Source: Neoechinorhynchus agilis
Taxonomy: Eukaryota; Animalia; Acanthocephala
DNA: 64,000 nt
NCBI GenBank assembly: GCA_051530055.1
Contig: CM121341.1
Location: 1,550,001-1,614,000, forward strand
Direction: 5' to 3'
Of this stretch, positions 33,913-40,791 are shown one piece after another. Both the position numbers and the translations under genes were made by a program. Numbering within the stretch: position 1 is the stretch's first letter; every line of letters starts with the position of its first letter. The notes under the pieces are model-generated. The model worked only from the letters and a program-made list of their open reading frames with translations. It did not search any database and was not told the origin of the DNA.

Positions 33913-34945
33913 GTGTCATCTGGGGGATCGGGAATTCAGGCGCTAGTAGACCTTGCTTTGCCGGCCTTTCTTGGATCGTTTGAGGGGAGCCTTCCAGTCT
34001 CGAAGAACATTTTGAGGGAAAAGTTCTGTCTTGACCGGGATTTCGTGGTGGCGGTTTAGGAATGGTGCCAGCAGACAGGCGCTAACCATGTTCCCGTGAA
34101 TGGACTCAGACAGTCGATCGGGGACGGACCTCTTGTCGCGAGAGCTCACAGCTCTCTACTTTCCGGTTCTCGCGATGGGGTCGTCCGAGCTAGACTGTTG
34201 GCAGTTTCAACACGAGAATCTGGGGCGTGGTTGGAGGCTGTTCCTCTGGCATCAGTGGGAACTCTTCTTACTGATGAGGTAACGAGGATCGCAGTATCCT
34301 TAAGACTTGGTCTCCCGATATGCACGCCCCATCGCTGTCGATGTGGGTCTTTGGTTGATGCTTTCGGGCGACACGGTCTCGTCTGCAGAAGGTCAGCAGG
34401 AAGGTTCTCACGCCATTCTGAAATCAATAACGCAATTTCTCGGGCGTTGAGAACGGCGAACTTCCCGAACATCCTGGAACCCGCCCATCTTTGTCGACTA
34501 GATGGCATTTCGGTCTTCCCGTGGCGGGAGGGCAAATGCCTTCTCTGGGACGCCACGTGTGTGGATACCCTCGCAGCCAGCAACATCCGCTACTCCCTCC
34601 AAATCGCCGGTGGTGCCGCCAGTGCAGCGGAAGGGGAGGAAAATACGGAAATATATTCAGTTATCGAGGTCTCACTATTTTGTCCCCTTTGGGGTAGGGA
34701 CGTATGGAGCGCTCGGCACTCTGCTCCCGGATCTCTCGAAGAAATTGAGAGAGGCAACCGGAGACTCAAGAGCAGGCTTATTTCTTCGACAAAATATCTC
34801 GCTGACAGTACAACGGGGCAATGCTGCCAGCGTGATGGCGACGGTCGAGGAAGGACAAAAGCTGGAATTTGGCGGGAGGTGGCGAGTGTGTTAATTGTCG
34901 AGAAATGAAGATTGATTGAATACATTTATTTGGTTAAAAAAACAC
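33913..34945 (+). mobile_element. 5'-truncated CRE-like retrotransposon, family B, copy 1 (frameshifted)
   Basis: ESGAWL, CRCG..D..G.H...C zinc knuckle, RHSEINNAI, PW..GK.LLWDAT RLE motif and QRGNAAS; near-identical to 45405-46571. Confidence 0.92.
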
Positions 34946-36062: not shown

Positions 36063-36289
36063 AAGTTAAACATTCAACAATTTTTCCTAAAATTTAAGGG
36101 AAAATCGGGATCATCATTAGCTGCGAAATAATAAAAATTGCAAAATGTTAATAAATTGCACCTCTAATATTTTTAATAGGCAAATCAAAACTTATTAAAG
36201 CTAAAAAAAGATTTTGAAACGTTAGTTCTCCCAGATTATTCTCCTGTCGTTATTTTGACCAGTACAAAAAATGCCAGCACCAATAAAAC

Positions 36290-39200
36290 TGAAACTCTTA
36301 AGAATAGTTTCAAAATCTCAATATTAATTTTTTTGATCGTTTGCATTCCACATTTAAAGCAACTTTAGAGTCCAGTTTAATGTTCTTTTTAATTTATCAA
36401 CAAAGACTTTGTACATCATCTTCCAACGTCTTAGAGCACCGTTCAAACTTTAACTCTTAAAAATAGTTTCAAAATCTTAATATTAATTTTTTTGATCGTT
36501 TGCATTCTACATTTAAAGCAACTTTAGAGTCCAGTTTAATGTTATTTTTAATTTATCAACAAAGACTTTGTACATCATCTTCCAACGTCTTAGAGCACCG
36601 TTCAAACTTTAACTCTTAAAAATAGTTTCAAAATCTCAATATTAATTTTTTTATTATCTGCTTTCTACATTTAAAGCAACTTTAGAGTCCAGTTTAATGT
36701 TCTTTTAAGTTTATCCCCAACGACTTTGTACATCATCTGCCAATGTCTTAGAACACTGCTCAAACTTTAACTCTAAAATAGTCTCAAAATTTCAATATTT
36801 ATTTTTTTAATTATCTGCTTTCTACATTTAAAGCAACTAGAGTCCAGTTTAATGTTCTTTTTAATTTATCCCCAACGACTTTGTACATCATTTACCAATG
36901 TCTTAGAACACTGCTCAAACTTTAACTCTTAAGAATAGTCTCAAAATCTCAATATTAATTTTTTTGATCGTTTGCATTCTACATTTAAAGCAACTTTAGA
37001 GTCCAGTTAAATGTTCTTTTTAATTTATCCCCAAGGACTTTGTACATCATTTGCCAATGTCTTAGAACACTGCTCAAACTTTAACTCTTAAAAATAGTCT
37101 CAAAATCTCAATATTTATTTCTTTTAATTATCTGCTTTCTACATTTAAAGCAACTTTAGAGTCCAGTTAAATGTTTTTTTTAATTTATCTCCAACGACTT
37201 TGTACATCATTTACCAATGTCTTAGAACACTGCTCAAACTTTAACTCTTAAGAATAGTTTCAAAATCTCAATATTAATTTTTTTGATTGTTTGCATTCTA
37301 CATTTAAAGCAACTTTAGAGTCCAGTTTAATGTTCTTTTTAATTTATCCCCAACGACTTTGTACATCATTTACCAATGTCTTAGAACACTGCTCAAACTT
37401 TAACTCTTAAGAATAGTTTCAAAATCTCAATATTAATTTTTTTGATCGTTTGCATTCTACATTTAAAGCAACTTTAGAGTCCAGTTTAATGTTCTTTTTA
37501 ATTTATCAACAAAGACTTTGTACATCATCTTCCAACGTCTTAGAGCACCGTTCAAACTTTAACTCTTAAAAATAGTTTCAAAATCTCAATATTAATTTTT
37601 TTATTATCTGCTTTCTACATTTAAAGCAACTTTAGAGTCCAGTTTAATGTTTTTTTAAGTTTACCCCCAACGACTTTGTACATCATCTGCCAATGTCTTA
37701 GAACACTGCTCAAACTTTAACTCTTAAGAATAGTTTCAAAATCTTAATATTAATTTTTTTGATCGTTTGCATTCTACATTTAAAGCAACTTTAGAGTCCA
37801 GTTTAATGTTCTTTTTAATTTATCAACAACGACTTTGTACATCATCTTCCAATGTCTTAGAGCACTGCTCAAACTTTAACTCTTAAAAATAGTTTCAAAA
37901 TCTCAATATTAATTTTTTTATTATCTGCTTTCTACATTTAAAGCAACTTTAGAGTCCAGTTTAATGTTCTTTTAAGTTTATCCCCAACGACTTTGTACAT
38001 CATCTGCCAATGTCTTAGAGCACCGTTCAAACTTTAACTCTTAAGAATAGTTTCAAAATCTTAATATTAATTTTTTTGATCGTTTGCATTCTACATTTAA
38101 AGCAACTTTAGAGTCCAGTTTAATGTTCTTTTTAATTTATCTCCAACGACTTTGTACATCATCTTCCAATGTCTTAGAGCACTGCTCAAACTTTAACTCT
38201 TAAGAATAGTCTCAAAATCTCAATATTAATTTTTTAATTATTTGCATTCTACATTTAAAGCAACTTTAGAATCCAGTTAAATGTTCTTTTTAATTTATCC
38301 CCAACGACTTTGTACATCATTTACCAATGTCTTAGAACACTGCTCAAACTTTAACTCTTAAGAATAGTTTCAAAATCTCAATATTAATTTTTTAATTATT
38401 TGCATTCTACATTTAAAGCAACTTTAGAGTCCAGTTTAATGTTCTTTTTAATTTATCCCCAACGACTTTGTACATCATTTACCAATGTCTTAGAACACTG
38501 CTCAAACTTTAACTCTTAAAAATAGTTTCAAAATCTCAATATTAATTTTTTTAATTATCTGCTTTCTACATTTAAAGCAACTTTAGAGTCCAGTTTAATG
38601 TTCTTTTTAATTTATCCCCAACGACTTTGTACATCATCTGCCAATGTCTTAGAACACTGCTCAAACTTTAACTCTTAAGAATAGTTTCAAAATCTTAATA
38701 TTAATTTTTTTGATCGTTTGCATTCTACATTTAAAGCAACTTTAGAGTCCAGTTTAATGTTCTTTTTAATTTATCAACAAAGACTTTGTACATCATCTTC
38801 CAACGTCTTAGAGCACCGTTCAAACTTTAACTCTTAAAAATAGTTTCAAAATCTCAATATTAATTTTTTTATTATCTGCTTTCTACATTTAAAGCAACTT
38901 TAGAGTCCAGTTTAATGTTCTTTTAAGTTTACCCCCAACGACTTTGTACATCATCTGCCAATGTCTTAGAATACTGCTCAAACTTTAACTCTTAAAAATA
39001 GTCTCAAAATCTCAATATTTATTTCGTTTAATTATCTGCTTTCTACATTTAAAGCAACTTTAGAGTCCAGTTTAATGTTCTTTTTAATTTATCCCCAACG
39101 ACTTTGTACATCATCTTCCAATGTCTTAGAGCACTGCTCAAACTTTAACTCTTAAGAATAGTCTCAAAATCTCAATATTAATTTTTTAATTATTTGCATT

Positions 39201-39375
39201 CTACATTTAAAGCAACTTTAAGTCCAGTTAATGTTCTTTTTAATTTATCCCCAACGACTTTGTACATCATTGCCAATGTCTTAGAACACTGCTCAAACTT
39301 TAACTCTTAAGAATAGTTCAAAATCTCAATATTAATTTTTTTATCTTTGCTTTCTACATTTAAAGCAACTTTTTT
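36290..39375. repeat. Tandem satellite, ~158-bp unit, ~19 copies, two alternating subtypes
   Basis: ctcttaa(g/a)aatag recurs at 36295, 36454, 36613, 36771... Subtypes gatcgtttgcattc and attatctgctttc alternate. Confidence 0.96.
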
Positions 39376-39499: not shown

Positions 39500-40234
39500 A
39501 TGCCACCAATCAAGCATTTCTTATACGGATGGCTAGTTAAGAACCGCAATGTGAGTCCAATATACGAAGTGGTAGAATCTGGCACAAGAACCCGGCGACT
39601 ATTTGATTGTTCACTTCGAGTACCGACATTCGACTACGTTGCCACTGGGCGTTCTTCAAGTAAGAAAAATTCGATGGAAAGTGCATCTCGTGATTTTTGT
39701 GAGTATCTCATTCGTGAGAACGCGATGGATTCAAAACTATTTTCAAGTATCGACAATATGTTCGATGAATCATCGGCCAGTGTTATTAAGACAGTGAATG
39801 GTAAAAGTAGTAACGAATTGATAAAACCGGAATCACAAGATGGAATTTGGACATTGAGTAATGCAAAATGTCGTCTTAGCAAATATTTGCAATCACGAAC
39901 TACAGAACCTCAAAGTGATTATCATTTCACAGAAACGGTCGTTAATAATCAACCGATATTCACTTCAGAAATGACCGTTTTCGTTCACGAGATTGGGCAA
40001 GAGATCAGGGCAAAAAAGACAGGTCCTAGCAAAAAAGAAGCTTCTAAAGCAGTCGCTTTATCATTACTTCGACAACTTTACTTTCTTGGAGTGATTTCAG
40101 GCTCAGAAGATAAAATGAAAACAAAATCAAAGCCGGTCAGTTCCGACGCAAAGACTTTTTTAAACACTTGTTGTTGTCCGTGTCACAAAACGCAAGAAGC
40201 AAAAGAAACGCGTAAAAGGAGATTTACAGCTTGA
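39500..40234 (+). CDS. Protein made of the two N-terminal dsRBDs of DHX9/RNA helicase A/MLE, without the helicase
   Basis: IKHFLYGW..K...P.YEV...F.C.L.V..FDYVATG.S.SKK.....ASRDFCEYL (dsRBD1) and WTLSNAKCRL..Y...EMTVFV...KKEASKAVALSLLRQLYFLGV (dsRBD2); stop at 40234. Confidence 0.85.
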   Translation: MPPIKHFLYGWLVKNRNVSPIYEVVESGTRTRRLFDCSLRVPTFDYVATGRSSSKKNSMESASRDFCEYLIRENAMDSKLFSSIDNMFDESSASVIKTVNGKSSNELIKPESQDGIWTLSNAKCRLSKYLQSRTTEPQSDYHFTETVVNNQPIFTSEMTVFVHEIGQEIRAKKTGPSKKEASKAVALSLLRQLYFLGVISGSEDKMKTKSKPVSSDAKTFLNTCCCPCHKTQEAKETRKRRFTA

Positions 40235-40476
40235 ACGTTAACATTTGAACTTATAAACACGATTTTAAGCTCGAAGTATGAACATTGTTTGTGGGGCGTA
40301 AAAACTAAAAGAACTCAAAAAAAGCACTATTTTTCGCATTCTTTATCAAGGTTTCTTGTAGGTTTTCTACGATTTTAGCTCACAATAAGCATACAAGATT
40401 GTACTTCGGCGAAATCAATCGGATTCTCAAAAATGATCTTAATTTTCAATCGCCATAAAACAACCACTTTATGCAC

Positions 40477-40601
40477 AAACGAATCAACGCGGCGACGGAG
40501 AGCCAAGATCGACTTCGTTCTTGGCGCAAAAAATAAGCATTGCGGTGCAGCGGGGCAATGCGGCTAGCATTTTGGCCAGCGCCGATGAGTGGGAGCGTTG
40601 A
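40477..40601 (+). mobile_element. 3' tail fragment of a CRE-like retrotransposon, family D
   Basis: Translates KRINAAT/EPRSTSFLAQKISIAVQRGNAASILASADEWER*. Confidence 0.75.
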
Positions 40602-40651
40602 AGAAACTATAAATTTGTGAAATATTTATCGGAATAAAAAAACTGATATAT

Positions 40652-40791
40652 TTTATTTCAATCAATCTTCATTTCTCGACAATTAACACACTCGCCACCT
40701 CCCGCCAAATTCTAGCTTTTGTCCTTCCTCGACCGTCGCCATCACGCTGGCAGCATTGCCCCGTTGTACTGTCAGCGAGATATTTTGTCGA
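40652..40791 (-). mobile_element. 3' tail fragment of CRE-like family B (copy 3)
   Basis: Near-identical to 34787-34920 in reverse orientation. Confidence 0.9.

Follow-up and report, generated by a model that had tools for sequence, protein, structure and literature searches.

A truncated, helicase-less paralogue of DHX9 in the acanthocephalan Neoechinorhynchus agilis

DHX9 is a much-studied helicase whose domains for the binding of double-stranded RNA (dsRBDs) guide it to inverted-repeat and hairpin RNAs. It has been reported to interact with the enzymes of RNAi and of A-to-I editing and, in the full-length protein, dsRBD2 normally contacts the helicase module. In MLE, mutating the lysines of region 3 of the dsRBDs weakens RNA binding, and the mutation of dsRBD2 abolishes function (PMC6451107). 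The dsRBDs of DHX9 have also been reported to serve for contacts with the proteins CBP and WRN (PMC5173168). Other proteins, such as TRBP/TARBP2, PACT, Loquacious, R2D2, plant DRB4 and the core of DGCR8, consist of dsRBDs only, together with a flexible linker. A partial duplicate kept as a non-enzymatic RNA-binding protein is a kind of gene already familiar, and a limited search of the literature found no report of a natural gene derived from DHX9 and reduced to its dsRBDs.

We analysed a stretch of 64 kb of the genome of N. agilis (the window, positions 1-64000), in which a gene related to the N-terminus of DHX9 begins at position 39500. Its parts are the following, "parent" designating the complete DHX9 of the same species, which is described below:

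39500..40234, plus strand: coding sequence of the truncated DHX9 paralogue, a single exon of 244 codons followed by TGA (from the list of open reading frames)
39509..39739, plus strand: dsRBD1 (residues 4-80), HMMER match to dsRBD1 of MLE and DHX9
39740..39838, plus strand: inter-domain linker (residues 81-113), 33 residues; in the pairwise alignment that of the parent is 28 residues longer
39839..40099, plus strand: dsRBD2 (residues 114-200), HMMER match to dsRBD2 of MLE and DHX9
40100..40135, plus strand: last 12 residues homologous to DHX9, a basic stretch past dsRBD2 (from the alignment; the tblastn match ends at 40132)
40136..40231, plus strand: non-homologous tail of 32 residues with CCCPCH and RKRR, without match in the parent

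We consider it rather probable (about 0.72) that this gene is a lineage-specific truncated paralogue of DHX9, kept under purifying selection and acting as a motor-less binder of dsRNA with two dsRBDs in tandem.

The frame opens with the ATG at 39500, which aligns with M1 of the parent, and closes with the TGA at 40232-40234, so that the product has 244 aa; an identical 244-aa product is on record, in its unspliced form (NCBI source, contig of 19,375,080 bases). Two stretches of this protein match Pfam dsrm (1.2e-15). Among solved structures, the top HMMER matches are the constructs of dsRBD1+2 of MLE (5ZTM and 6I3R, approximately 3e-25), followed by full-length MLE and then by dsRBD2 (3VYX, 1UIL) and dsRBD1 (3VYY, 1WHQ) of DHX9. 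The human and mouse structures of the two DHX9 domains match separately and in the correct order, and the extents against the solved structures are residues 4-80 for dsRBD1 and 114-209 for dsRBD2. The sequence-only reading, made from the letters of the window, had described both dsRBDs as of DHX9 type and as followed by a CCCPCH and basic tail and a stop: the matches above agree with the former statement, and the open reading frame reads exactly as was quoted in the latter.

The AlphaFold2 model of the protein, computed from an input alignment of 25 rows, predicts two alpha-beta-beta-beta-alpha domains, each with pLDDT >90; the pLDDT falls below 50 at linker residues 96-113 and the confidence is low after residue 200. 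The top Foldseek matches of the model are the dsRBDs of MLE and DHX9 (5ZTM at 4.4e-17), with TM 0.87 and rmsd 1.5 A for dsRBD1 against 3VYY, and TM 0.81, rmsd 1.8 A and 42% identity for dsRBD2 against 3VYX. In the model, both domains have the predicted fold of a canonical (type A) dsRBD.

The N and K residues of helix 1, which contact RNA, are retained in both dsRBDs. In the HMMER alignment, region 3 of MLE dsRBD1 (N52/K53/K54/K58) corresponds to S54/K55/K56/E60 and that of dsRBD2 (N223/K224/K225/K229) to S177/K178/K179/K183, so that K55 and K56 align with K53 and K54 of MLE, and K178, K179 and K183 with its K224, K225 and K229. This means that the KKxxK lysines are kept in both domains, except at the fourth position of dsRBD1 (K58 of MLE), which is an E in the window copy as well as in the parent. 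From the retention of the helix-1 N/K and of the region-3 lysines, we infer a motor-less protein binding dsRNA or hairpin RNA. The GPxH loop of region 2, lying between strands 1 and 2, is lost in dsRBD2, where VVNN stands in place of the GPDH of other animals and of the GPDN of the parent, and several conserved alanines and glycines and one histidine are also altered in the window copy. Hence, the affinity for RNA may be reduced or altered.

Compared with DHX9 and MLE (5ZTM, 6I3R, 3VYX, 3VYY), which give the best matches in sequence as well as in structure, the window protein has the same two domains in the same order and keeps the lysines of region 3. It differs from them by the absence, from the whole 244-aa product, of the MTAD tryptophan linker, of the DExH core (RecA1/RecA2, motifs I-VI), of HA2, of the OB-fold and of the C-terminal RGG/nuclear-transport region with its NLS, its own tail having no RGG. 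The shorter linker, the lost GPxH of dsRBD2, the new tail and a rate of evolution 2-4 times higher are further differences from DHX9. Stand-alone cofactors are also found among the structural matches of Foldseek (7ZPK, 8DFV, 5N8L, 2N3F, 7V6C) and, by analogy with TRBP-type cofactors, the window protein can be presumed to work in the same mode, i.e., to bind duplex RNA and to pass it to enzymes or shield it from them. Unlike these cofactors, to which it is 13-22% identical, it was derived independently, from a helicase gene, and it lacks the third, Dicer-binding type-B dsRBD of the Dicer cofactors TRBP, PACT, Loqs and R2D2. Membership in the TRBP/PACT/Loqs/R2D2 family was considered and rejected: the protein has two domains, the resemblance is one of structural matches only, and the closest sequences are those of DHX9.

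A comparable architecture is predicted in tsetse flies. The protein A0A1A9VZS9 of Glossina brevipalpis (279 aa, predicted) combines a dsRBD1 and a dsRBD2 of DHX9 type with a basic tail and has no helicase; it belongs to another phylum, is 28% identical to the window protein and forms a long branch among the arthropod DHX9 in our tree. Two further predictions, A0A1A9Z0E1 of G. pallidipes and A0A1A9VZU2 of G. brevipalpis, consist of two or three repeats of dsRBD2 type. As the tsetse proteins stand on a separate long branch among arthropods, their truncation looks like a parallel and independent event, and these predicted proteins hint at convergence. (The labels P0044, P0007 and P0022 designate dsRBD-only predictions of G. 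brevipalpis and G. pallidipes.)

Our genome searches covered the assembly of N. agilis, i.e., 46,219,100 bases in 102 contigs with an N50 of 16.4 Mb (PMC12690905). The six-frame search with the 244-aa product found one other locus, C2:11759498-11760217, which is part of the following gene:

C2:11759490-11762856: complete DHX9 (the parent), with both dsRBDs and the helicase core

The first exon of the parent has 372 codons, encoding dsRBD1, a longer linker, dsRBD2 and a tryptophan-rich linker, and its second open frame, of 706 codons, matches human DHX9 at 6.8e-265; the parent was searched exon by exon (L009:4490-5605 and L009:5740-7857). Apart from its helicase core, the genome contains no core of DHX9 type, the other DEAH matches being at most 50% identical. 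The title of the sequence-only reading presented the window gene as DHX9 itself, reduced to two dsRBDs; since a complete DHX9 lies on another contig, the window gene is instead an additional paralogue. The parent is annotated as a protein of N. agilis of 1085 aa (P0174). The interruption of the parent before Walker A (C2:11760604-11760716) can be taken out as an ordinary GT-AG intron of 113 nt in phase 2, in agreement with the sequence of P0174 (...GTALE/PRTVLDK...); approximately 13 extra residues compared with human DHX9 are left by this model. At 1085 aa, P0174 ends without the usual C-terminal region of DHX9.

When the pieces of the parent were compared with the 64-kb window by tblastn, positions 39509-40132 alone were matched, at 41% identity over 239 aa. 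The homology stops at residue 242 of the parent, short of its WxPP...NWNPW stretch; the helicase piece gave nothing better than E = 2 in the window, and no remnant of parent residues 243-372 or of the helicase was found by tblastn downstream of the window copy. The lack of any helicase in the window, which had been read from the letters, is thereby confirmed with the worm's own DHX9 core. These results support a stand-alone protein of DHX9 ancestry with two dsRBDs and no helicase to join.

A maximum-likelihood tree of the dsRBD1-dsRBD2 region was built from 25 sequences, namely DHX9 from vertebrates, flatworms, nematodes, a nematomorph and arthropods; the dsRBD-DZF proteins of tunicates served as outgroup. 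In this tree the window copy is the sister of the N-terminus of N. agilis DHX9 (support 100/99); the branch of the copy measures 1.38 and that of the parent 0.32 (a ratio of about four), and their shared stem 0.74. Tajima-type relative-rate counts with six outgroups gave 28-39 changes unique to the copy and 10-14 to the parent, with p between 7.5e-5 and 0.016. The copy has thus evolved about 2-4 times faster than the parent. At eight positions where the parent changed, the copy retains the pan-animal residue (K179, E157 and A62, for example), which argues for an old split and not for a recent derivative of the parent. Both worm copies have KAVALSL, in contrast to the KSCALSL of the other animals (a rotifer fragment included), and KKSAM or KKNSM instead of their KKDAQ; these common motifs suggest that the duplication took place on the acanthocephalan side, a placement drawn from short shared motifs only. 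In the databases, the DHX9 models of rotifers are truncated at their N-terminal end, that of Brachionus (P0182) beginning within dsRBD2. The HMMER search of 1.84 billion representative proteins found no orthologue of the window gene, the best match other than itself being at 8.8e-28 with 30-40% identity, and a word-based search of proteins with the 244-aa product gave back nothing but the product itself.

Two side observations can be added on relatives of these sequences. The dsRBD-DZF proteins (P0002, P0011, P0018 and P0020, from the tunicates Phallusia and Styela and from metagenome or Logan contigs) carry DHX9-like dsRBD1 and dsRBD2 and then DZF; the members which we inspected have a further dsRBD2-like domain, and Pfam, run on P0002 only, reports DZF_N and DZF_C. 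Their domain order is the reverse of that of ILF3/NF90, and they form a clean outgroup to the DHX9 N-termini in the tree. In addition, an orphan fragment of 45 nt at C1:7693469-7693513, minus strand (L010 2970-3014), is 93% identical to positions 40060-40104 of the window; it corresponds to the end of dsRBD2 of the window copy, and the rest of the gene is absent around it.

The six-frame scan of the genome (46 Mb) for dsrm gave ten exon-level matches, which is a lower bound: two in the window gene, two in DHX9, and the others in ADAR, Dicer, a dsRBD protein with a JAZ zinc finger and three small unclassified proteins. The dsRBD repertoire of this genome looks small. As Dicer and ADAR were found, enzymes of RNAi and of A-to-I editing are present in it.

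The DHX9 homology ends at 40132, and the sequence CCG/GTCAGT follows at 40133-40141, with its GT at 40136-40137. This donor-like site had been pointed out from the letters, together with the lack of a helicase exon to join; the site is indeed present, and tblastn finds no such exon in the 64 kb. The parent has no intron at the position equivalent to 40136. In the local non-coding DNA, the probability that a frame stays open for 32 codons after a random point is approximately 0.09-0.10, AlphaFold2 gives the tail a pLDDT of 45-59 (low confidence), and the tail with the 3' flank (40133-40476) has no other match in the genome. Hence, CCCPCH and RKRR may be mere read-on sequence, and the significance which the sequence-only reading attached to the tail does not survive: it starts where the homology ends, its length is within that of chance read-on and its modelled structure is of low confidence. 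The tail is probably disordered. As 40133-40476 is unique in the genome, the tail does not visibly come from a transposable element. RKRR could serve as a nuclear import signal in place of the C-terminal one which was lost.

A donor-like GT exactly at the end of the homology would speak for a split gene, with the dsRBD and helicase halves encoded apart, or with 40136 spliced to helicase exons outside the window. The sequence-only reading had kept such a half gene among its explanations and had proposed a search for a full-length DHX9 or a helicase-only half elsewhere: the full-length gene exists in one copy, at C2:11.76 Mb, and the genome search with the helicase core found no helicase-only half. 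Since the sole DHX9-type core is joined, on another contig, to dsRBDs of its own, the split gene is refuted, and we leave it a barely perceptible chance; moreover, the window gene is just 41-47% identical to the N-terminus of the parent, tblastn uncovered no trace of a helicase in the 64 kb, and the closest locus of DEAH type on the contig of the window gene lies at a distance of 11 Mb, with 32-46% identity. The same GT could be a real donor if the window gene were the first exon of a chimeric gene, whose true C-terminus would be a different, non-helicase exon. The site lies in phase 0, at the very point where the homology ends, and resembles nearby donors (the lamin-like gene downstream uses ACG/GTGAAA). 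However, joining 40136 to any of the plausible acceptors (YAG with a pyrimidine tract) of the 1.8 kb ahead of the next gene adds at most 28 residues, the longest continuation falls within a repeat element, and the product on record is the unspliced one of 244 aa. We therefore regard a chimeric gene as distinctly unlikely, and either C-terminus leaves a pair of dsRBDs: the protein is helicase-less whether or not the donor at 40136 is used.

The window gene could also be a dead relic, i.e., a partial duplicate drifting neutrally whose frame stayed open by luck, or a very recent pseudogene. The fast branch of the copy, the loss of the GP of the dsRBD2 loop, the position of the gene between the satellite array and the inserted mini-elements and the fact that no orthologue or transcript was found would suit such a relic; the protein collection holds no transcript-derived copy of the window product, and the supplement of the N. 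agilis paper (PMC12690905) has no DHX9 or dsrm entry. The divergence from the parent, on the other hand, tracks the codon structure. Over the 212 codons aligned between copy and parent (a comparison of the pair), codon positions 1, 2 and 3 show identities of 0.60, 0.66 and 0.38; with a saturated pS (0.84) and a dN of 0.48, a dN/dS proper is not computable. A neutral drift long enough to saturate silent sites would have brought positions 1 and 2 near random too, unlike what is observed. In the stretch of homology, three gaps, of 28, 1 and 2 codons, separate the copy from the parent, and none of them breaks the frame. At conserved positions (residue common to at least 60% of the other animal DHX9 sequences) the copy keeps 72% of the parent residues, versus 31% at variable ones, i.e., 2.3 times more (odds ratio 5.7, Fisher p = 2.6e-7). 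Finally, in simulations of neutral decay from the parent, the frame of 243 codons was open in 0.03% of the runs at d = 0.25 and in 0/20,000 at d >= 0.5; the simulations allowed substitutions only, and frameshifts would cut this chance further. Taken together, the codon-position pattern, the in-frame gaps, the retention of conserved sites and the simulations point to selection for a readable, folded protein during most of the history of the copy. By these sequence comparisons, the window copy is a coding gene under selection, or was one until a short time ago; we take it to be almost certainly functional, and a dead relic is most improbable. A selected gene could have been kept for another function: its dsRBDs would mainly bind proteins (Dicer/RISC, ADAR or the DHX9 helicase module), titrating or bridging partners. 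The degenerate region 2 of dsRBD2, the contacts reported with CBP and WRN and the presence of both Dicer and ADAR in the genome are in keeping with such a protein-binding module. Against it, the RNA-contacting lysine motifs and the helix-1 N/K are kept in both domains, just as RNA binding would select, and we hold it to be unlikely.

For a selected, motor-less paralogue binding dsRNA, the following course of events can be proposed. An old duplication took up the start codon of DHX9 and, with it, the ~242 codons at the beginning of exon 1, i.e., dsRBD1, the linker and dsRBD2; the helicase core, the HA2/OB module and the C-terminal tail either were never copied or were lost later. The frame of the copy now continues for 32 codons in unrelated DNA until it meets a stop. 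Purifying selection has acted on the two dsRBD folds and on the lysine RNA-contact motifs in spite of the faster rate. The product, of 28 kDa and presumably expressed, would bind RNA that is double-stranded or forms hairpins, but would not unwind it. This protein might act in trans, competing with full-length DHX9 or modulating it on shared RNA or protein partners or, by analogy with TRBP, Loqs and the DRB proteins, act as a stand-alone dsRNA-binding cofactor. A gene made of the targeting head only and maintained by selection would show the function of this head by itself, be it RNA shielding, competition or that of a cofactor, and would offer a natural separation-of-function allele of DHX9. 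More daring, and in our estimate very improbable, is the idea that the RNA-recognition head of DHX9 has become a free-standing regulator which coats or marks hairpin RNAs and controls the access of DHX9, Dicer and ADAR to them, its candidate targets being, speculatively, the transcripts of ~10^3 hairpin or hammerhead mini-elements. If this were true, a helicase gene would have given rise to a natural competitor of its own product, acting in trans and maintained by selection. As far as these sequence-based arguments go, the locus would remain a well-supported case of gene evolution rather than a new mechanism.

The surroundings of the gene contain the following features:

36172..39372, no strand assigned: satellite array with a period of 159 bp, ~20 copies (repeat families D1-D6)
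40477..40615, no strand assigned: high-copy mini-element of ~140 bp, inserted 240 bp past the stop, with many copies at 96-97% identity
40640..40791, no strand assigned: second high-copy mini-element, 135-152 bp, with copies at 90-99% identity
41976..43759, plus strand: lamin-like gene, the next one on the same strand, with an intermediate-filament domain (PF00038) and a GT-AG intron

The lamin-like gene is the one which the sequence-only reading had named as the next on this strand, correctly. The 159-bp satellite is made of two alternating subtypes and stops 128 bp short of the start codon. Only these 128 bp of unique promoter space precede the window gene, which we count against a functional paralogue. 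On the other side, the two mini-elements span 240-560 bp downstream of the stop, and their copies are found on all large contigs. They were searched with a query of 868 bases covering both, which gave 955 first-look candidates, 40 of which were scored; among the matches listed, 30 of the 43 fall on the element at 40640-40791. Rfam at gathering thresholds found no RNA family, hammerheads included, in the whole window (1-64000), minimal hammerheads being such as may score below these thresholds. Any link between the window gene and hairpin or ribozyme elements is pure speculation. A further copy of the element at 40640-40791 lies in the window at 34786-34920, on the minus strand, and an inverted repeat (40545-40588 / 40726-40769) spans both mini-elements.
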